64,000 nt of DNA from Heteronotia binoei (taxonomy: Eukaryota). The notes below the pieces were generated by a model that was not told the DNA's origin, searched no databases, and saw only the letters and a program-made list of their open reading frames with translations. This document shows positions 731 through 55,560 of this stretch, piece after piece. Numbering within the stretch: position 1 is the first letter of the stretch; each line of letters begins with the position of its first letter. The position numbers and the translations under genes are program-made. The stretch covers positions 40,982,001 to 41,046,000 of the forward strand of contig NC_083227.1 in the NCBI RefSeq assembly GCF_032191835.1. The letters run 5' to 3'.

Positions 731-1091
731 GGCCCAGTTAGAGTGCTAACATTCAGGTGGGGGATGGAGTTGTCCCAGAATTGCAACAGATCTCTACACT
801 ACAGAGACCAGTTGCCCTGGAGAAAATGGCTGCTTCAGAGGGTGGGTTCTTATGCCATGGAGCCCTGGGGCCAGTGCATGTGAAAAGTATGTGGAGGGCT
901 TGAAACTTTTATTATTTATTTTTATTTTATTTGGTGGATTTATATTCCACCCTTTCCCAAGTGGGCTCAAGGCAGATCGCAGCATAATATAACCAGTTAA
1001 AATACAGCAATAAATTAATAAAATACAATTGAACACAACTCAATAAATATAGCAAACGGGGGGCAGGCTCATATTGCAGAGCACAATATAG

Positions 1092-1227
1092 CAGGGGTGG
1101 CCAACGGTAGCTCTCCAGATGTTTTTTGCCTACAACTCCCGTCAGCCCCAGCCATTGGCCATGCTGGCTGGGGCTGATGGGAGTTGTAGGCAAAAAACAA
1201 CTGGAGAGCTACCGTTGGCCACCCCTG
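1092..1227. mobile_element. Palindromic hAT MITE (136 bp)
   Basis: Near-perfect inverted repeat caggggtggccaac...gttggccacccctg; perfect 8-bp TSD caatatag (1084-1091 / 1228-1235). Confidence 0.9.
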
Positions 1228-1435
1228 CAATATAGTTATCGGCCCGAATATAATAGTTCATATGGTACATCATTGTGGGGGAGGATAAAGATGGTGTAGA
1301 CAGTGAAACAAAGGATGCCCACTTGCCTCAACCAAAAGCCTGGCAGAATAGCTCTGTTTTACAGGCCCTACGGAATGGTAACAAGTCCTGCTATAGTTAA
1401 TGTTAATATAGTTAATAAGAATGCCAATAATTGGT

Positions 1436-1640
1436 GGCGCCTTGACCTGGATGACGCAGGCTAGCCCAGTCTCATCAGATCTCAGAACTGAAGCAGGGTC
1501 AGTCTTGGTTTCTATCTGGATGGAAGACCGCTAAGGAAGTCCAGGGTTGCTATGCAGAGGCGGGCAATGGCAAACCACCTCTATTTGTCTCATGCCTTTT
1601 AAACCCTATGGGGTTGCCATGTCAGCACTTTCCACCCCCA
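1436..1640 (+). mobile_element. 5S rRNA-derived SINE
   Basis: Degenerate 5S-like head (tcagatctcagaactgaagcagggtc...ggatggaagaccg) followed by a ggcaatggcaaaccacctct tail; several related copies in the window. Boundaries approximate. Confidence 0.75.
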
Positions 1641-2012
1641 AGTAGTACGATGATGAACTCTTTATGTTTTATGGATCTTTCACACCAGGAACTATGTCTG
1701 ATGTCACAATTTCCAAATTTCCATATTAGAAAGAAAAACGTCTTACAAAGACATATTATCAGGTTCTATTGGCTGCTGTCTTGGCATCACTGCTACATCA
1801 CAAACTGTTTTTTTCCCCACCAGCCACCCAATCTCAGGGCAAACTACGGGCAATTTCTATGATTTGACCCTTAGTTATATGATTAGTTAGGACCTGCTTA
1901 AAAAAAATTTATGACAGGGAAGAACAACTCACAAAGACATACTATGACCAGCCTTTGGGCTGCCGATCTCTGCTACATCACAATCGGAGAGGGGGGTGGC
2001 CTCCCCAGCCAT

Positions 2013-2061
2013 CCAATCACAGGGCAAAGAGGTGGTCCCTCATTTGAATACAAGAATATAA
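2013..2061 (+). promoter_or_regulatory. Candidate H2B-type core promoter: CCAAT box, octamer-like element, TATA-like element
   Basis: CCAAT 2013-2017, ATTTGAAT 2042-2049 (1 mismatch to octamer ATTTGCAT), AATATAA 2055-2061. Same order as vertebrate H2B promoters, about 80 bp upstream of the ATG at 2138. Confidence 0.5.
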
Positions 2062-2137
2062 CAGAACATGTGAGCCCAGCCCTGAGGCATTCATCTGTAA
2101 GGCATACAGCTGACAGGAGGCACAGAGAATTGAAACA

Positions 2138-2752
2138 ATGGCTGCTTCCCAAGGTCAGAAGAAGAAAAGGGCCCAGCCTCAGAAGAAACTGAAACAGAAA
2201 CTGCCTATACAACCCAAACAAGGGAAGCAGGAGAAGACGAAGCGGACAAGGAGGCGAATGAATAAGTCCCGGAACACAAAGCGATCTTCCAGCGTGTTTG
2301 TGTCTAAGGTGCTGAAGCAGCTGTGCCAAGAAAAGGTGCCCCTCCCAGCCAAGGACAATGAAAAGACAGTCTTTTCGCAACGCTGTTTCCTGGCAAGCCA
2401 AGATGGGCAGCAGCAGCAATGTTTCCTCAGCAATTTCGTCTCCTCTCAAGCTGCCTCTGATACCACGGAGAGCCTCAATGTGCCCATGGTAACGGCATGC
2501 CCTTGCAAGCCAGCTGCAACCAGATGGACTGCCACCATTTCTCCTCCACAGCAGAGTGCCCTGACAAGCCAGCTGTGGCCGGAAGGGCAGCAGCAATACT
2601 TCAGCAATGCGGCAACCTCTCAAGCCCTCTATAGCCAGATGAACACCCTCGCTGCCAAGGAGCTGCACTATGAGGTGAATGAGAGGATGCCTGTGCCCAA
2701 GCAATCCGTCATGTGCTTGTTCGCCAACAAGCCCACCAACCCTCGATATTAG
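2138..2752 (+). CDS. Intronless 204-aa protein with a Lys/Arg-rich N-terminus and a histone H2B-like helix-1 motif (divergent H2B-derived candidate)
   Basis: Strong Kozak context (acaATGg). KRSSSVFVSKVLKQL aligns with H2B KESYSIYVYKVLKQV (9/15 identical) after a basic tail; the rest is Gln-rich and only weakly H2B-like. Confidence 0.5.
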   Translation: MAASQGQKKKRAQPQKKLKQKLPIQPKQGKQEKTKRTRRRMNKSRNTKRSSSVFVSKVLKQLCQEKVPLPAKDNEKTVFSQRCFLASQDGQQQQCFLSNFVSSQAASDTTESLNVPMVTACPCKPAATRWTATISPPQQSALTSQLWPEGQQQYFSNAATSQALYSQMNTLAAKELHYEVNERMPVPKQSVMCLFANKPTNPRY

Positions 2753-3883
2753 CTCAACAACACACTCTTTCTCCCTTGGCTGGCATGAATGATTTCTTAA
2801 GGGGAGAAGGAAGAGAAGACATGGCTAGCCTTTGAAAAATCCCATCTTCCACCTGACATTGCCATGAATGATGCTGAGAAACCCAGTGGTCTAAAGAAAT
2901 GACTTGCCTACAACAATCTTACAAGGGAGGGAGCGAAAGGCCAATCTTTACTTGAGAAAAAGACTTTGAGATGTAAATGTGACAACACCTTCCCCTTTCT
3001 TATTAAAAAGGAGAGAGCTTTTGGCTCCTCTGGATTTCCCAGTGCTTGGATTGTATGTTAGAGATTTCCCTGCAGGACAAGAAACATAAGTTACTATTAA
3101 CATACTAATAAAGTGGGATTTTAGAAAATGTCTCTTGTTTAGCAATGACTTTTTTACTTGTGTTGTGTGTGTGATGCAATAATCACTGGGTTTATGCAGA
3201 AATTGTTATTATTGCTCATGGCGAGTCAAACAATTAAAACAATTAAAGACTAATTACAGTATAAAACAGCCAAAAATAAAACCATGCTAAAAGAAACTCT
3301 GTCTCTACAGTAGTAACCTAACAGTCCAGAAGTCCATTGGGCCGTGGTTGCTGGAATAAGAGCAGGGGCGGGGAGGCCTAAAAACAGGTGATGTCCACTG
3401 CCTCAACTAAAGGCCTGGCGGAAGAGCTCTGTTTTGCAGGCCCTTCAGAACTGAAGCAGATCCTGCAGGGCCTGGATCTCCAAAGGAAGCTCATTCCACC
3501 AGGCAGGTGAAATAAAATTTATATTCCACTATTTGCCCTCACAAGGCCAGCAAGATGGCTAACAATTTAAGAAATGCAAGATAAGATCACATTTTAAAAC
3601 CATTAAAATCAGTTCCCCCCCCCCCCAAAAATACACATCATTACAGCTATTAAAAACAGAGTTGAAATACATACAAAACATTTTTTTAAACACTTAAAAT
3701 GTTGGCTAGGGAGGACAGAATGCCCAACAACAAAAAAAGTTCCTCACCTGCTGGCGGAAAATGGCAACAGACAAATCTCCCTAGGGCGAGAGTTCCAGAG
3801 TTTTGGTTCCATGACCAAGTAGACCCTTTCCCAGGTTGCCACCCACCTCATCTCAGAAGGGGGAGGCACCCAAAGAAGTTCCT

Positions 3884-5390
3884 TGTGGAGACACAGCTGG
3901 GCTGAGCGTCTGTCTGAGAGAGAGTTTGAAGTCAGAAGGGGACAAAACCAGGCACCTTCTGCAAGGGAAACTCTCTGGGAGTTCTGCCAGCACATCTAGG
4001 CAGACTCCTTGCATAAACTGAGATCACTCAAACGCTCTGGAGGGAGGACTGGATTCTGGTGGCTAGAAGGGAATCCCAAGACTCAGACAAGGAATCTAGC
4101 TGTGGCTGACACACAAGAGTGACAGGCTGGTATTAGCTCTCAGAGGTGTGAGTCCTGGAAGCTAGTGTGTATGTCTTTGTGGGAGAATTAATCTGGCACC
4201 AGTCAGAAGTTCTAAGTGTGTGTGGAAAAGAGTGACTGTCAGTTTATGTCCCACTCAGCCTGGGCTGGGACTCCACGGCCCCCCCCCACGCTCGCCAGCC
4301 ATTCCCCCCCCACCGGCACCCAAGGAGCTCCCCGCCTTGCTGCTGGATGCCCCAGCAGCCGCGCCACCACCTACCTGGGCGTCCAACGCCCGAGTGACGC
4401 CCCCGGCAGCACCCCCCAGCCCCCGCAGCTAGCACACATAGCCCCAGGCACGAGGAGTCTGGCTGATGCGCAGCATCGAAGGCGGCCGGGGCTGGGGAGC
4501 AGAGAAGGAGACCAGCAACTGCGGAGGGAGGGGCCGGCAGGCCAAGCTGCGATGGCTGGCACTGCTGTGCCTCGACATTCCACGAAGGCCATGGACGACC
4601 CAGCAGCCCCAGGGTGGCCAAGCCCTGGAGCGCCTCCCCCCGGCATCCAGGCTTATGAATGGGGGCGGAGCCAGAAGGGGGTGGGACCCGGGGAGTGGGG
4701 AGGGAATTGGCAGAGGGATAAAAGGGAGAGGGACAAGAGATTGGGGAGGAAGCTGGCTGAGGCAAAAAGGGGCTGCCAACTGAGAGAGAGAGGAGCCCAC
4801 ACCCATCCAGAGGGAAAAGGGGGCCTGAGGTGCAGTGACCTGGCTCCCTCCCCTAATTCTGAGACCTCAAAGGGACACTCAACCAGGTCTCACAAGGGGC
4901 GATCCAGGCGGGGGGGCGACAGCCGCACCAGGGGACCGCAAGGGGCGCCTGGGGCACGACAGTTTATTATTTTTATGATTTGAGAAGCCAGAGCAGAGGA
5001 CTATATCATCTGAATGGCAAAGCATTCCTAGTGCTCAGTAGGCACTGCCTGCCTGTCCTAGGGTATTGTATAGTTCTAAAGCCTGCCAGTGTTATATTTT
5101 TTATGTTATCTCAGCCTGATAAACCTCTAGTAAATAGTAATTGATTATTCCAGTAACCATCTGCCAACCAACTGATTCGTTGTATTTGATCAGATCTAAT
5201 CAATATTATTTTTATGCCTCTCCCTTGCCTTTTGTAATCCAATAAACATTTCTTTGTTTTTTGTTTTTTAACTGTCTGGTGCCTAGTTTACTTTAGTTCT
5301 GACAAAATTTCTGTGTGTGTGTCTGAGGGAAATTTGGAGGAAATTTTATAATGGTCGCCCTCCCAAGCCGACCGTGACCGATTCCTCACA
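3884..5390. mobile_element. LTR-like element with GC-rich interior (tentative)
   Basis: Begins tgtggag and ends ctcaca (TG...CA); AATAAA near 5241; CpG-rich core about 4260-4960. No clean TSD found. Confidence 0.3.
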
Positions 5391-46799: not shown

Positions 46800-47060
46800 A
46801 GGGCTTTTTTTGAGCAGGAATGCACAGGAATGCAGTTCTGGCTGGCTTGGCATCAGGGGTGTGTGGCCTAATATGCAAATGAGTTCCTGCTGGGCTTTTT
46901 CTACAAAAAAGCCCTGTGTGAAACAATGGTGACATCAGGGTGCGGCCTAATATGCAAATGAGTTCCTGCTGGACTTCTACAAAAAAGCCCCGTGTGAAAC
47001 AATGGTGCTATCAGAAGGTGTGGCCTAATATGAAAATAAGTTCCTGCTCAGTTTTTTCTA
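46800..47060. mobile_element. agggcttttt-family MITE with tandem internal units carrying ATGCAAAT octamers
   Basis: Repeated gtgtggcctaatatgcaaatgagttcctgct units at about 46860, 46940 and a degenerate one at 47020. Confidence 0.75.
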
Positions 47061-48488
47061 CCACCCCACCCCCCGGAACCCATATAAATCAATTCACCAA
47101 GAGCAGGACATATTTACCATATAGATTTATTTATTCATTTGCAATATTTATTTATTGCAATATTCATTTGCATTTATTTATTCATTTGCAATATTTCTAG
47201 GCTCACCTTTCTACACCCCAAAATAGTACCCACAACTTCTGGTTCCAAATCAAAAGGTTTTGCCTGTCAAGGGTTATCATTATATGGATAGGACAGAGGC
47301 TGGGAAGCTGCTTTGCCTTCATATCTCTATGAATTTGTGTATTTTTTGCCTTACGCTGACTAGAAACAGTGTACAACAGTGAATTTCCAGAGTTTCTTCC
47401 TCTTCCTAACTTCATGTTATGTACACTACAGATAGAAATGCATAACAGTCAGGAGGGGCAGCACTGTGCTGGACTTTGAACAGAGTGATGGGAGGTTCAG
47501 ATTGCTCCTGAAATCTTGAAGCTCATTGGGTGATCCTGGGCCAATCCCTTTCTCCTGATCCAGCCTACCTCATAGGGTTGACTGGAGGATAAAGCTGGAG
47601 GAAAGAGCCCTAGACATGCTACCCTGAGCTCACTGGAGAAAGGACAGCATCAATCAACCTGTAGCTGGTTCCTTTCTCCTTGCAACTGTAGTTATGGGTG
47701 TGGTTTTACCCTAGCTGAAATGCCATGCATTTATTATAATACAATAAAACTCAAGCAACAGAATAGAACCAGTTAGAAAGCAGTGCAATTTGTATGATAT
47801 TAAACACCTGGGTGAATAGGCATGCTTTTCTTTCACACCTAAAATAAAAAATGGGTGCCAAAGGAAGGGCGGGGATCAGCAACATTATATAAATAAGAAG
47901 GTAGTACATCTCTTACTAAATAGCTGTTCTGCAAAATGCTATACAGCTGCCATAAATCATACTGTTAGGAAGGGTCCAATCACGAAGAGGGTCATATCTC
48001 CAGTAGCTCCAAAGGTCGGGCCATCCAAAGTCAAGCCTCCAGCTACAATCTTAACAAATGAGCAGACTCAAAGTGCACTTGTCAGGATTTTTAGTGTATG
48101 TGTGTTATAGCAGTTAAATGGATATAATGGCACTGTGATATAAAGCTGTCCAGGCTGTTATTATCAGTGAACTCCAGATAAACCTGAAGGCTGATACATG
48201 AGGTTTGTCACTGTGTTGAATCCAAACCAGCCCCAAGAGCAAAAACAAACAAACAAGAACAACAAACCAAAAACATGCAATATAAAAAACACCATTCATT
48301 AATCAGATATTCAGGAGGTCCTGAGATAAACTGAGATTGTATTTTCTATAAAATCCATAAGAAAGTGATGGTTCTGCTTGGAGCAGCTTTTAGCTGAGTT
48401 AGACAACTGCCTAGTCTCCCACTGCCAAGGCCAACTATTTCAATAACAGTTCCTTCTCTCAAGGTGGTGACAGGTCTTACCTCTAGAG

Positions 48489-49085
48489 CAGGGGTGTTGA
48501 ACATGCAGTCCGGGGGCTGAATCAGGCCCCCAGAGGGCTCCTATCAGGCCCCTGAGCCACTGGCTGTGGTCTGCTTCCTTCTCCTTTCTCTTGCTTTCTT
48601 TTGCATCATAGCTTGCTTTGCCAGGCTTGCTCAATTGCACAGGAGCTACAGAGCAAAACCTGTTTTCTCCATTGGCTGAGGCTCCACCCTGGGGGCGAAG
48701 GGGGGAGGAGAGCTTGCTTTGCCAGGCTCTCTCAATCACACAGGAGAGCTACTGATCCAAGCCTCTCTTCCTTCTATCAGCTAAGGCTTCTCCCCCTCCT
48801 GGTCCCCTGAAGAAAGAAGGAAAGAGCCAGAGCTTCCTTTGCCCAGTTCCCTGGATCACACGGGAGAGATACAAAGAAAGCATCTTTATGACCAATAAAT
48901 GCTAATGTTTTAAGATTGTTTTATTTAAAGTTTTTTTTAAAAAAAATATTTGTGTTTTCTGTGTGTTTTACAAATTTTATATCTCTGCTACCCGGCATTA
49001 CATTTTATGACACACACGGCCCAGCCCAACAAGGTCTCATTTATGTCAGATCCGGCCCTCATAACAAATGAGTTTGACACCCCTG
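48489..49085. mobile_element. hAT MITE (caggggtgtcaaac family) at the end of LAAO intron 6
   Basis: TIRs caggggtgttgaac / gtttgacacccctg; TSD ctctagag/ttctagag. Confidence 0.9.
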
Positions 49086-49179
49086 TTCTAGAGTATACCA
49101 GTGGGGGGAAATATTGTGAAGAAGCCCCTCTGTCTTTCTGTTTCCAACCTGTTTATTCAACTTTGCTTTTGTCTTGCAG

Positions 49180-49981
49180 CTATAATGAAATAGCAGGAGG
49201 CATAGATCTACTGCCAAGAGCCATTTACAAAACCATCTCGGGACAGGTACTCTTGAATGCCAGAGTGGTCAGGATAAAACAGAGGAATGGTGCTGTTACT
49301 GCAATATATAAAACGCTTGACCAAAGATTGTCAAGTGTGACAGCCGACTACGCCATTCTCACCCCTACAACAAAAGCTACCCGGCGCATCTATTTTGAAC
49401 CGCCCCTCTCAGCTAACAAATCTGATGCCTTGCGAGCTGCTCACTACAGGAGTGCCACCAAGGTCTTCCTTGCTTGCTCCAAGAAGTTCTGGGAAGCTGA
49501 TGGCATTCATGGTGGGATGTCTCTCACTGATCGCCCATCCCGACACATCAACTACATTGCCCATAATTTCTCCAGTGGCATTGGGGTTCTCTTGGCTTCC
49601 TATGTCAACACCGCTGACTCCGATTTTTTCTTGTCCCTCAGCCATGAAGACATCATTAACATTGTCCTGGATGACCTGTCAGTCATCCATCAGCTGCCTA
49701 AAGAAGAGATACAAAGTATCTGTAACTCCTCAGTGATAAAACGATGGAGCCTGGATCAGTATTCCATGTCTGGCTACACTCGGTTCACCCCCTACCAGTT
49801 TGTAGAGTATACTCAACCTCTTCAGGAGCCAGAAGGTAGACTCTATTTTGCTGGGGAGCACACCTCTTTGCTCCATGGTTGGGTAGACAGTGCAATAGTG
49901 ACAGGACTGAGAGCAGCAAGAGCTATCAATTTTTTGTGTGGGAAGCAGCCCCAGATCATCAAACCATCTAAGAAAAATTAA
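49180..49981 (+). CDS. LAAO: L-amino-acid oxidase, exon 7 (802 nt, C-terminal half and stop)
   Basis: ttttgtcttgcag| acceptor in phase 2; YNEIAGGIDLLPRAIY...AHYRSATKVFLAC...HNFSSGIGVLLASY...WSLDQY...FTPYQF...RLYFAGEHT...HGWVDSAIVTGLRAA; stop TAA ends at 49981. Confidence 0.96.
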
Positions 49982-51690: not shown

Positions 51691-52816
51691 CCACTGGACA
51701 CGCCTCTTGCTACAAGGGCTTTAGGGCACCCCAAGCATGGCACCCCATGCTCCCAAATTTTGTCCCCTGGGGACAGCAAATGAGAAGTCAATATTTTTTG
51801 CCTCTTTATGATTGCCCCAGAAACAGAAAGACATACATCTATCCATACAAAATTTGAAAGATTAAATGCAATGTCTTAGATTCTTTGCTAAAGAAGGACT
51901 CCAAACGATACTGAAATGCGACAACATATTCCCCCTCATTAAAAAGGAGAGAGCCTTTGGTTCCACTGGATTTCCCAATGCTTTGACTGCATGTCAATTA
52001 TGGTTACTGTATCTCCAAAAAAAGATATGGCAAAGCTAGAAAAACTGCAGTAGAAAGCAACCACTGGGCCATTTCCCACATGGATTCTTTACTCAACCTT
52101 GAGTCGAGTCCAATAGCACTGTAGAAGCCAACAGGATTTTGGAGATACAACCTTTTGAGTAAGCTCCCTTGGTTAGATCTGACACAGGGAGGTTTGACTC
52201 TCAAAAGATCATACTCCCCAAATCTTGTTCCTTTCTAGGGTGCTGTTGGACTCAAAACTCGCTGTTCTGCTGCTACCCTCTGGAAACTTACTGAGCCTTG
52301 ACTTTCTTACAGCCATGCTGTTGTCAGGAGCATCCACACAATGTCCTCCTCTATTTATCAGCTTCCATGTCTTCCTCCACTTTGCTGCTATCTTTTCCAA
52401 ACTAATATTTGGGGAAAGATCACAGTCAAAGACTGCTCATACGCCATGTGGCCGGAAAGGATTTTGCAGGTGTCCCCTCCATCGATGCCATTTTCCTTAC
52501 CCCCACCCCCCACAGCCTCCTCATTGCCCCCAAACACACAAATAATGGAGGGCTTTCCAGGCTTTTGTTTTTTAAAACAGGAATTGCTAGACTGAGATTT
52601 ATTATAACAATTTACTGCCACAATCTGCTAGTTCCCAGATAAATGTTTTAATAAATAAATACTAACCTGTCTGGCATGATTTCATTCGTTTCTTTCTTGC
52701 TGGATTAACCCCCTCCCCTTCATTAATGTCTAATAGTGCACCTCTAAGGAAGGGTTACACTGGGTTGCCCAGTTTGGGAAGATTTGGGTACACTTGAAGA
52801 TTTGGGTACAGTGCCT

Positions 52817-53762
52817 AGGAAGGACCCCAAATTGGCTCTCAGCCATTCTGAATAGAGGAATGTTTGGTTCAGATTTGACCTCTATAGTATCACCATCTTG
52901 AATACAAGTGCCTTAAGATCATAAGTGTTGTAGTAGTTAGAGTGTAACAGGGCTTTTTTTGTAGAAAAATCCCAGCAGGAACTCATTTGCATATTAGGTC
53001 ACAGACCCTGACATCAACAGTGTTTCACACAGGGCTTTTTTGTGCGAAAAGTCCAGCAGGGACTCATTTGCATATTAGGCCACACACACCCCTGACACCA
53101 AGCCAGTCAGAACTGCATTCCTGTGCGTTCCTGCTTAAAAAAAAAAAAAGCCCTGGAGTGTGAAACTAAAATCTGGAAGACTCCCCACTCTGCCATGGAA
53201 GCTCATTGAGTGATGGTGGGCCACTCTCTCTCGCTCAGCCTAAGCTACCATTGTTGTGATGATAAAATGGAGGATGAGAGTATGGTATAAGTCATTTGGG
53301 GCCCCACTGGAGAAAAGGTGTAAATTCCTAATAAAGAAATTAAGACAGCACACACACAAATCCAGCTTGTTCCTAAATTCATTTCTATACATCTTTTTCA
53401 TTCAGCATAAGAATGGACTCCTGATTAGAAGCTGAATGCCCAGCTACCAACAACACATGAATGCAGACACCTGGTGTTAAGCAGTTTCTCCCTCAAAACA
53501 GAAGATTCTAAACCACACTTCGATGCGTAGATGCCTGGCTTGTAGGGTGGGGGCTACATCAGGTAAACTCACATACCTGGATTTTTACATCAGAAGCACC
53601 AGAGGAAGTTTCTAGCCAAGATCCTCCATTGAAAAGAGTAAGGAAGCGTGAGCCACATATGTGAGTCTGGCCACAGCACAAGCTGGGTTTGGGCAGAAAA
53701 GATCTCATAAACACTTGGAGTTTCATACATGGAGGAGCCTGGTTTCCTGTTTATGGTGACAA
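52817..53762 (+). repeat. Segmental-duplication block B' (paralogous to 7366..8052)
   Basis: Same non-TE sequence as block B, plus an agggcttttt MITE at about 52948-53156. Confidence 0.85.
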
Positions 53763-53834: not shown

Positions 53835-55105
53835 ACTTCAAATAAACGACTGGCTACATTGATGGTGTCGTTAGAAAAGATTCAGATTCTTCCAAATAAA
53901 CGATAAAGAGGATATAGAATTTCAGACGGTCTGGGATGCTTATAAAGCAGTAATGAGAGGAATATTGATTACATTGAATAACAAAGATAAGAGGGCAAAA
54001 GAAAAACAGATGTTGGACATTCAAAATGAAATAAAGAAAAAAAAGGGGAACTGAGAAAAATGCCAGGGGAAAAGAAAATTATAAGGGAGATTACAATATT
54101 AAAAACGCAAATGAGACATTTGTTAAATAAAAAACTTCAATGGAATCTGAAAAGATTGCAGCAGAAATCTTTCGAGGGAGCAAACAAACCCGGAAAATAT
54201 TTGGCCTGGCAACTGAAGAAAAAGAGAGAAAGTAAAATTATTAATAAAATTGTGGTGGATGGAAGAGAAGAATAAAAAGAGAATTCTTTAAGTATTATGC
54301 CAAGTTATTTAAAGGTGTTAAAATAAGGGGGGGAAAGATGGATGAGTACTTACAAAAGATAAAAATAGCACCCTTAGCAGAAAATATGCTAAAAGTTTTG
54401 AACGATCCAATTGAAAAAATAGAAATTGAAGCAGCAATTAATACAATAAAAAATGGAAAAGCACCTGGGCCAGATGGATATACAGCTAAATTTTTTAAAA
54501 CCCTCAAAGAGGAGTTAATCCCGAAACTTCAGAAATTGATGAATATGATAAGAACAAAAGGGAAAATACCAAATACATGGGAGGAAGCTGTTATTTTGTT
54601 GATTCCAAAGGAAGACAGAGATGTTATGAACGTAAAAAATTATAGACCAATTTCATTATTAAATAATGACTATAAAATATATACAAGAATCTTGGCAGAA
54701 CAGTTTAAACAATATTTGATAAATTTTATAAAGGAAGATCAAGCGGGGTTTCTTCCCAAAAGGCAAATAAGAGACAATATCAGAACTGTTGTAAATATTG
54801 TAGAATATTATGAAAGACATCCAGAAAAGGAAGTAGCATTATTCTTTGCAGACGCAGAGAAAGCATTTGACAATTTAAATTGGGATTTTATGTTTGCAGT
54901 AATGGAGAAAATGGAGCTGGGAGAAAGCTTTATGATAAAAGCAATATATACTGAACAATGTGCAAGGCTATGTATAAATGCTGATCTTACAGAAGACATG
55001 ATAATTAGTAAAGGTACAAGACAAGGTTGTCCACTTTCCCCGCTGTTGTTTATAATGACTCTTGAAATATTACTGATGCAAATTCAAGAAGATAAAGAAA
55101 TAGAA
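53835..55105 (+). mobile_element. L1-clade LINE ORF2 fragment (reverse transcriptase N-terminal half)
   Basis: KAPGPDGYTAKFFK...NYRPISLLNNDYKI...QAGFLPKRQIRDNIR...DAEKAFD...GTRQGCPLSPLLF. Confidence 0.93.
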
Positions 55106-55560
55106 AGTAGTGACCATGAGATTTTGGAATTTACAGTCTTAGGGAAGGGAAAAGCTATACGTAGCCAGACTTACAGGTTGGACTTCAGAAAGGCAAACTT
55201 TGATAAATTTAGAACTATGCTGGGTAAAATCCCATGGACAGAAATACTTAGGAAGGGGTTCAGGAGGTCTGGGAGTTTCTTAAAAGCGAAATACTGAAAG
55301 CGCAATCACAGACAATTCCTACGAGAAAAAAAAATGGAAAAAGCCTAAAAAAGCCGAAGTGGCTCCATAAACAGCTCTCTAAAGACTTGAGAAATAAAAA
55401 AGACTCCTTTAGGAACTGGAAGAAGGGCCTTATAACCAAGGATGAATTTAAACAAATCATCAGTGCTTGTAGAGAAAAAGTTAGGAAAGCTAAAGCTCAG
55501 TATGACTTAGGCTGGCCAAAGATGCTAAAAACAACAAAAAAAGGTTCTTTTCTTATGTTC
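55106..55560 (+). mobile_element. CR1 LINE internal fragment (endonuclease C-terminus and linker)
   Basis: SDHEILEFTVL...SQTYRLDFRKANFDKFRTMLGKIPW and KPKWLHKQL...CREKVRKAKAQ peptides typical of CR1 ORF2. Confidence 0.85.

Follow-up and report, generated by a model that had tools for sequence, protein, structure and literature searches.

An intronless gene family of geckos and snakes combines an H2B-type promoter with a protein that is not a histone

Introduction

Near one end of a 64-kb stretch of gecko DNA, the whole of which is here called the window, lies an intronless open reading frame (ORF) whose product begins with a basic tail and whose upstream region carries a CCAAT box, an octamer-like element, and a TATA-like box. 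An earlier note on this DNA, made from the sequence alone, read the ORF as an orphan gene that may be a fast-evolving, polyadenylated variant or derivative of histone H2B. The locus raises the questions of whether the ORF is a functional gene, whether its product is a histone, and where its H2B-like features came from.

Results and Discussion

Gene structure and transcription

The ORF with its start context (A at -3, G at +4), the basic tail, the CCAAT, octamer-like, and TATA-like elements, and the AATAAA all lie where the earlier note had placed them (Table 1). The window holds no second copy of the gene, the sole other match being an 84-nt piece of the 3'UTR at 51914-51994, which agrees with the note's remark that the other spacer of the LAAO array has no counterpart. 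On the opposite strand of the gene runs an antisense ORF of 243 aa with a TTG start (1973-2704, - strand); nothing independent supports it, and it is a by-product of the gene's codon composition.

Table 1. Features of the gene, its relatives, and its surroundings. Positions are those of the window unless a locus (L001, L005) is named.
Feature	Position	Strand	Remarks
Distal degenerate tandem duplicate of promoter region	1740-1925	+	Direct repeat D3, 186-nt spacing
CCAAT box (CCAATCA), presumed NF-Y site	2013-2017	+	Invariant in 7/7 family genes
H2B-box-like element CTCATTTGAATAC	2039-2051	+	Contains octamer-like core ATTTGAAT at 2042-2049
TATA-like box AATATAA	2055-2061	+	TATA element 7-9 nt past octamer-like element in 7/7 genes
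5'UTR	2090-2137	+	Transcription start at or a few nt upstream of 2096-2101
Coding sequence	2138-2752	+	204 aa plus stop codon, no introns; intact orthologous ORFs, dN/dS 0.29, unspliced reads
Basic N-terminal tail, aa 1-50	2138-2287	+	Lys/Arg/Gln-rich, pI 12, net +19, fast-evolving
Short helix, aa 51-64, SSVFVSKVLKQLCQ	2288-2329	+	Resembles H2B helix alpha1
Family-specific body, aa 65-204	2330-2749	+	Gln/Ser/Ala/Pro/Thr-rich, pI 7.9; constrained
Internal repeat unit 1, aa 81-105, QRCFLASQDGQQQQCFLSNFVSSQA	2378-2452	+	Self-alignment; DNA repeat family D2
Internal repeat unit 2, aa 138-163, QQSALTSQLWPEGQQQYFSNAATSQA	2549-2626	+	Self-alignment; DNA repeat analysis
Conserved 3'UTR block	2773-2853	+	CCCTGGCTGG ... 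TGGCCAGCCTG ... TCCCATCTTCCACC; about 80 nt, just past stop codon
Poly(A) signal AATAAA	3107-3112	+	Transcript end shortly downstream
LAAO/IL4I1-type large exon	48950-49981	+	Amino_oxidase, E=2e-42; at least one LAAO-type exon in window
Reverse-transcriptase ORF	54338-55297		RVT_1, E=3e-26; downstream of LAAO-type exon
Gekko kuhli family genes	L001:8233-8841 and L001:10806-11414		Intact ORFs, annotated KAL8212891/KAL8212892
Naja naja paralogues 1 and 2	L005:10001-10588 and L005:17987-18565		Intact intronless ORFs, 8 kb apart

Transcription was examined in two samples with the same species label, one represented by runs X5 and X7 and the second by run X6, with 6% of each run read. In X5, 21,146 of 10.17 million reads (about 0.2%) fell on the gene, and the number in X7 was similar; X6 had none. 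The mRNA is very abundant in one sampled tissue and absent in another, and the expressing tissue is probably the germ line. Coverage in X5 and X7 was continuous from 2097 to about 3110 without splice joints, and the summed depth of both mate orientations peaked at about 5,700. Read starts piled up at 2097, 2099, and 2101; a few reads reached 2096, and none fell in 1641-2040. This edge (2096-2101) is about 35 to 45 nt downstream of the TATA-like box. Read coverage seldom extends to the very 5' end of a transcript, so transcription probably begins a few nucleotides upstream of this edge, nearer the usual 30 nt from TATA. The agreement with the start predicted in the earlier note (about 2085-2100) is near exact. 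At the 3' end, the summed depth fell from about 890 (3001-3080) to about 67 (3081-3160) and about 6 (3161-3240). The reads are unspliced and end past the AATAAA, as expected from the note's proposal of an intronless polyadenylated transcript. The RNA library was unstranded, and the + strand was assigned by means of the gene's promoter, poly(A) signal, and coding constraint.

The note's remark that there is no histone stem-loop was also confirmed, with no Rfam match to Histone3 in 1000-4500 even at an E value of up to 10. The 3' stem-loop and lack of poly(A) that mark a replication-coupled histone gene were not found here. Both untranslated regions contain conserved blocks. In the 5'UTR, GAGGCA and ATTGAAAC(A/C)ATG are invariant and identical in gecko and snake, and the 3'UTR block at 2773-2853 has been kept between gecko and both snake paralogues despite a dS of >1. 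RNAalifold detected no covarying structure in the latter block, and a structured RNA was therefore rejected; the block may be a candidate binding site for post-transcriptional control.

At about 19 sites, every RNA read departs from the window sequence, and about 11 further sites are polymorphic. The reads therefore come from another allele, from pooled animals, or from a gene copy that lies outside the window. Allelic variation is favoured, since a 2015 DNA run has some of the same variant letters. Position 2500 shows three states in the RNA reads, i.e., at least three haplotypes, which point to pooled animals or additional expressed copies. A dip in depth at 2281-2360 probably reflects divergence beyond the 95% cut-off. 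Within the species label, the region of the basic tail is highly polymorphic or divergent, with some stretches too diverged to map.

Relatives in geckos and snakes

In Gekko kuhli, a word search turned up two hypothetical proteins, which correspond to a tandem pair of intact intronless ORFs of 202 aa. The introns annotated for KAL8212891 and KAL8212892 are artefacts, as the DNA shows the reading frames to be uninterrupted. The window and the G. kuhli locus share about 80% nucleotide identity. In the snake Naja naja, the 356-aa protein KAG8127839 is an annotation that fuses two separate paralogues. Both snake paralogues are also present on Logan contigs that, going by similarity to Naja, come from a second snake. 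Gecko and snake proteins are 41 to 45% identical. Only three clusters matched when 1.84 billion representative proteins were searched exhaustively with HMMER, one from gecko and two corresponding to the snake paralogues, and no family member was found in the predicted proteomes of other sauropsids.

The gene, which the earlier note called an orphan, is therefore not restricted to geckos, since snakes carry two paralogues. From its presence in both geckos and snakes, we estimate that this squamate family is about 200 My old. Its database entries are only mis-modelled hypothetical proteins, the gene is missing from the protein set of the genome that holds the window, and a literature search found no description of the gecko/snake family. 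The family is invisible in current annotation, though it has been kept in geckos and snakes and its transcript ranks with the most abundant ones of one gecko sample.

Selection on the coding sequence

We compared the window gene with G. kuhli by the Nei-Gojobori method, taking the body as codon 64 to the end. The dN/dS ratio was 0.29 for the whole gene and 0.18 for the body, with 30.5 synonymous differences over 90 sites and 25 non-synonymous differences over 324 sites (Fisher P = 7e-9). The ratio of tail and helix was 0.7 to 0.8 (about 0.75 for the tail), indistinguishable from neutral (P = 0.48). In snakes, the ratios were 0.09 for paralogue 1 and 0.48 for paralogue 2. The variants in the RNA reads carry the mark of coding constraint as well: 8 synonymous and 4 non-synonymous changes fell in the body and 2 and 8, respectively, in the tail (Fisher P = 0.043), and the single indel was an in-frame GCA.

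Stops, frameshifts, and a dN/dS near 1 at orthologous loci, which the earlier note had named as evidence against its proposal, were not what we observed; orthologous ORFs are intact, and the gene is real and under purifying selection. A non-functional relic (a pseudogene, a transposable-element fragment, or a non-coding RNA) with a reading frame open by chance would account for the near-neutral evolution of the tail and for AlphaFold models that look disordered (see below). Such a relic would not be expected to leave seven intact ORFs across lineages with saturated synonymous sites, indels that are all in frame, a conserved start context and stop position, and a body as constrained as this one. 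The window also holds a single copy with no hallmarks of a transposable element and with very high, regulated expression. Selection and conservation refute the relic, to which we give almost no credence. A narrow clade, purifying selection, and expression characterise a taxonomically restricted gene family, and all three were found.

Tail, helix, and body of the protein

The basic tail is followed by KRSSSVFVSKVLKQL; the protein further comprises one short amphipathic helix and the body. The body has invariant residues C95, W130, and C193 and the motif F-x-Q-R..L..QDG..QC.LSN..SS, and it has no credible Pfam or PDB relative. Self-alignment revealed an old internal duplication in the window protein (P = 0.007) and at the same place in Naja paralogue 2 (P = 0.0015). 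No signal peptide or hydrophobic segment was found in the 204-aa protein (highest 19-residue hydropathy, 0.48). AlphaFold runs with 3 and with 9 sequences gave models with a pLDDT of 34 to 35, about 30 in the body, and with one helix (aa 52 to 64) and a small hairpin. Neither run produced a histone fold, but models of such low confidence do not exclude one, and with so shallow an alignment they are weak evidence.

Absence of a detectable histone fold

The earlier note compared the protein with H2B in the tail and the helix that follows it and in further landmarks of the body. For the helix, the H2B alpha1 motif YSIYVYKVLKQV and the gecko segment SSVFVSKVLKQL match with a shuffle P of about 2e-4. 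The resemblance is thus beyond chance in geckos for a single target chosen in advance; it does not hold database-wide. The match to Pfam Histone (PF00125) reached 13.9 bits (E = 0.066) against a cut-off of 26.4, covered only the tail and alpha1, and was restricted to the 3 gecko members when all members were scanned. For the window protein, spurious Pfam matches were equally good (Resistin, E = 0.074; dDENN, E = 0.11). In a PDB search, all 52 matches of the window protein were to H2B, with aa 25 to 63 aligned to H2B residues 10 to 50 at an E value of about 0.5. A gecko-only profile did not improve these matches, and with a 9-sequence family profile they were gone and no histone was found in the PDB. 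In snakes, the helix shuffle test gave P = 0.18 for Naja paralogue 2 and no match for paralogue 1. The tail resembles the H2B tail in nothing beyond composition (P = 0.087).

We additionally aligned the family by hhalign with a profile of 68 complete H2B proteins from metagenome contigs, fetched with a pattern that excluded the vertebrate VYKVLKQ form. The family aligned over 12 columns (P = 0.1, probability 0.6%) and the geckos over 16 columns (P = 0.019, probability 2.4%), in both cases entirely inside alpha1. When the seven genes were searched in all six frames with an H2B model, nothing was found off-frame and nothing beyond alpha1. The body is therefore not a frameshifted histone fold, and the same test together with dN/dS ruled out a frameshifted H2B pseudogene. 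A hidden histone fold was likewise rejected, as the family profile against the PDB, Pfam, hhalign, and the six-frame test were all empty beyond alpha1.

An extremely diverged but true H2B variant, with a fold interrupted by insertions and an internal duplication and pairing with H2A in specialised chromatin, would explain the collinear short motifs pointed out in the earlier note and the repeated placement by HMMER of aa 158 to 183 on H2B residues 77 to 102. That stretch scores about -1 bit, however, and the further landmarks proposed in the body have no statistical support from the PDB search, hhalign, or the six-frame test. The confinement of hhalign to a few columns of alpha1, an H2B model empty across the reading frames, a family profile that finds no PDB histone, and AlphaFold models with one helix and a small hairpin at a pLDDT of about 35 also speak against such a variant, which we consider very unlikely.

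The histone fold alpha1-L1-alpha2-L2-alpha3 with the alphaC of H2B was thus not found, and the proposed H2B variant, in the sense of a member of the H2B family, was not supported by Pfam, the family profile, hhalign, or the six-frame test. Two properties of replication-independent H2B variants, polyadenylation and restricted expression, are present; the third, a recognisable histone fold, is not. The protein is no histone, nor is it a member of any described family. Without a detectable histone fold it cannot, on current evidence, replace H2B in the nucleosome.

An H2B-type promoter conserved in seven genes

The promoter ties the family to H2B more strongly than any other feature. The arrangement CCAATCA-N24-CCTCATTTGAAT-N7/9-TATA, followed by 77 to 83 nt to the ATG, is common to all seven family genes. 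In the promoter core, gecko and snake are 77 to 83% identical despite saturation at synonymous sites (dS > 1). The 13-nt chicken H2B box is CTCATTTGCATAC; the family element matches this box at 12 of 13 positions. The octamer-like core ATTTGAAT agrees with the canonical ATTTGCAT at 7 of 8 positions, with one mismatch in every member. In H2B genes, the octamer ATTTGCAT is bound by Oct-1 (PMC5706932). The three elements of an H2B-type promoter (CCAAT, octamer, and TATA) are all present, the octamer in this 7/8 form. A distal degenerate duplicate of the promoter region retains a CCAAT box (1828-1832) and lacks the octamer-like element, and the same arrangement occurs in G. kuhli.

The promoter composite is present a single time in the 64 kb of the window, where 0.02 occurrences would be expected by chance. 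Of 125 fetched loci, only the seven family genes and two genuine H2B genes (L105 and L077) had it upstream. The H2B genes used for comparison all came from metagenome contigs. The promoter of L105, a typical metazoan H2B gene, reads GCCAATCAGA, 22 nt, CCTCATTTGCATGC, 5 nt, and TATAAA, with CCTCATTTGCATGC in the place of the family's octamer-like element. Alignment with the L105 promoter gave P < 3e-4 for snake paralogue 2, P = 0.009 for Naja paralogue 1, P = 0.025 for the window, and P = 0.2 for G. kuhli. The H2B-type promoter that the earlier note had recognised is thus conserved in seven genes and resembles that of L105. A remnant of a divergent H2A partner upstream was rejected, as 800-2100 contains no ORF for one.

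These data bear directly on an alternative in which the squamate family is just as real but has no H2B ancestry, the tail, the helix, and a promoter of CCAAT, POU site, and TATA having come together independently by convergence or chance. The protein similarity is below threshold and confined to geckos, the tail similarity is compositional (P = 0.087, above), the octamer-like core is never the canonical ATTTGCAT, and a transposable-element repeat of the same window carries CTCATTTGCAT-like motifs as well, all of which speaks for this alternative. It fits less well with the great rarity of the promoter composite by chance, with the agreement of spacing and flanks with a genuine H2B promoter, and with an intronless gene whose helix lies at the H2B position relative to the N terminus. 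We regard independent origin as possible but rather unlikely. Even without H2B ancestry, the locus would reveal a conserved protein family that is new for squamates, whose expression is clearly switched and whose promoter and 3'UTR are conserved to an unusual degree.

Repeats elsewhere in the window

Inverted repeat copies at 46805-47061 (-) and 52961-53143 (+) are 82 to 92% complementary, lie about 6 kb apart, and flank the last LAAO exon. They are built of units of about 80 nt, each with CTCATTTGCATAT, a perfect octamer, and most likely arose when one transposable element inserted twice, in opposite orientations. The octamer motifs that the window contains away from the gene were set aside, as they proved to belong to a transposable element. 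Upstream of the gene, a near-perfect hairpin at 1076-1243 has 79-nt arms that are 91% complementary and a 10-nt loop. It matches Rfam mir-5408 and mir-727 on both strands below the gathering scores and resembles the hairpin of a MITE or another transposable element more than it does a curated miRNA. The segment 1438-1640 is a high-copy repeat: its summed contig depth was 369 to 593 in one small DNA run, and every RNA run had a few reads on it. Rfam gave a weak 5S-rRNA-like match (20 bits, short of the threshold), and the repeat is possibly a SINE.

Origin of the 5' module

We lean towards a squamate family whose 5' module derives from an H2B gene and was joined to a novel, internally duplicated body, a reading that we hold to be somewhat more probable than not; this grading covers both partial duplication with fusion and promoter capture alone. 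In the former case, an H2B gene would have been partly duplicated and its promoter, probably with the tail and helix alpha1, joined to unrelated sequence. An origin by DNA duplication of an H2B gene is plausible, mainly on the basis of the promoter, and the gecko helix sits at the distance from the N terminus expected of H2B alpha1. Capture of the promoter without any H2B coding sequence fits the data equally well. With a polyadenylated mRNA and no histone stem-loop, expression would be uncoupled from S phase. The tail may act in nuclear import or nucleic-acid binding, and the body may bind a partner.

If the H2B ancestry is true, a core-histone gene here handed its promoter and N-terminal module on to a non-histone protein, an event that can rarely be traced, and the family is a squamate counterpart to the turnover of mammalian germline H2B. 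More speculatively, and in our view rather doubtfully, a squamate ancestor that we place at about 200 My may have trimmed H2B to its promoter, tail, and first helix and added new sequence, giving an abundant "histone-tail-only" nuclear protein of germ cells. Such a protein would work outside nucleosomes, engaging the partners of the H2B tail (importins, chaperones, tail readers, or DNA) through its fast-evolving tail, and its new constrained domain would have a different job. If true, this would be a histone-derived, non-histone chromatin or perinuclear class without a described counterpart.

Comparison with known systems

Canonical replication-coupled H2B genes are likewise intronless and have CCAAT, an octamer-type element, and TATA at comparable spacing, and their products have a basic N-terminal tail, after which a KVLKQ-type helix begins about as far from the start as in the family. 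In contrast, the family lacks the histone fold (alpha2, alpha3, and alphaC are missing), its mRNA is polyadenylated and without a 3' stem-loop, and its octamer core is ATTTGAAT. The window protein, at 204 aa, has an unrelated, internally duplicated body, and its gene is expressed in one sample rather than S-phase-wide. That a histone gene can yield a basic protein outside the nucleosome has a precedent in the H1-derived, protamine-like sperm nuclear basic proteins. These are expressed in spermatids and basic over their whole length, whereas here the basic part is limited to aa 1 to 50, with a body close to neutral (pI 7.9).

The mammalian germline H2B variants comprise H2B.1/TH2B, H2B.W, H2B.L/subH2B, H2B.K, and H2B.N, all of which retain a recognisable histone fold and group with H2B phylogenetically (PMC8857922). 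This mammalian survey makes no mention of reptiles or lizards (PMC8857922). The squamate family resembles these variants in being lineage-restricted, with fast-evolving tails, local duplications, and tissue-restricted expression from mostly polyadenylated mRNAs; it differs in having neither a recognisable fold nor a grouping with H2B.

Orphan and chimeric genes formed by partial duplication and fusion share with the family a narrow phyletic range and a lack of detectable homologues over most of the protein. Tandem duplicates, a body whose structure is uncertain, and strong expression in particular tissues are further points in common. Unlike them, the squamate family is old, being present in geckos and snakes, and is clearly constrained. 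It also appears to retain a recognisable donor promoter, which in such genes can rarely be traced.
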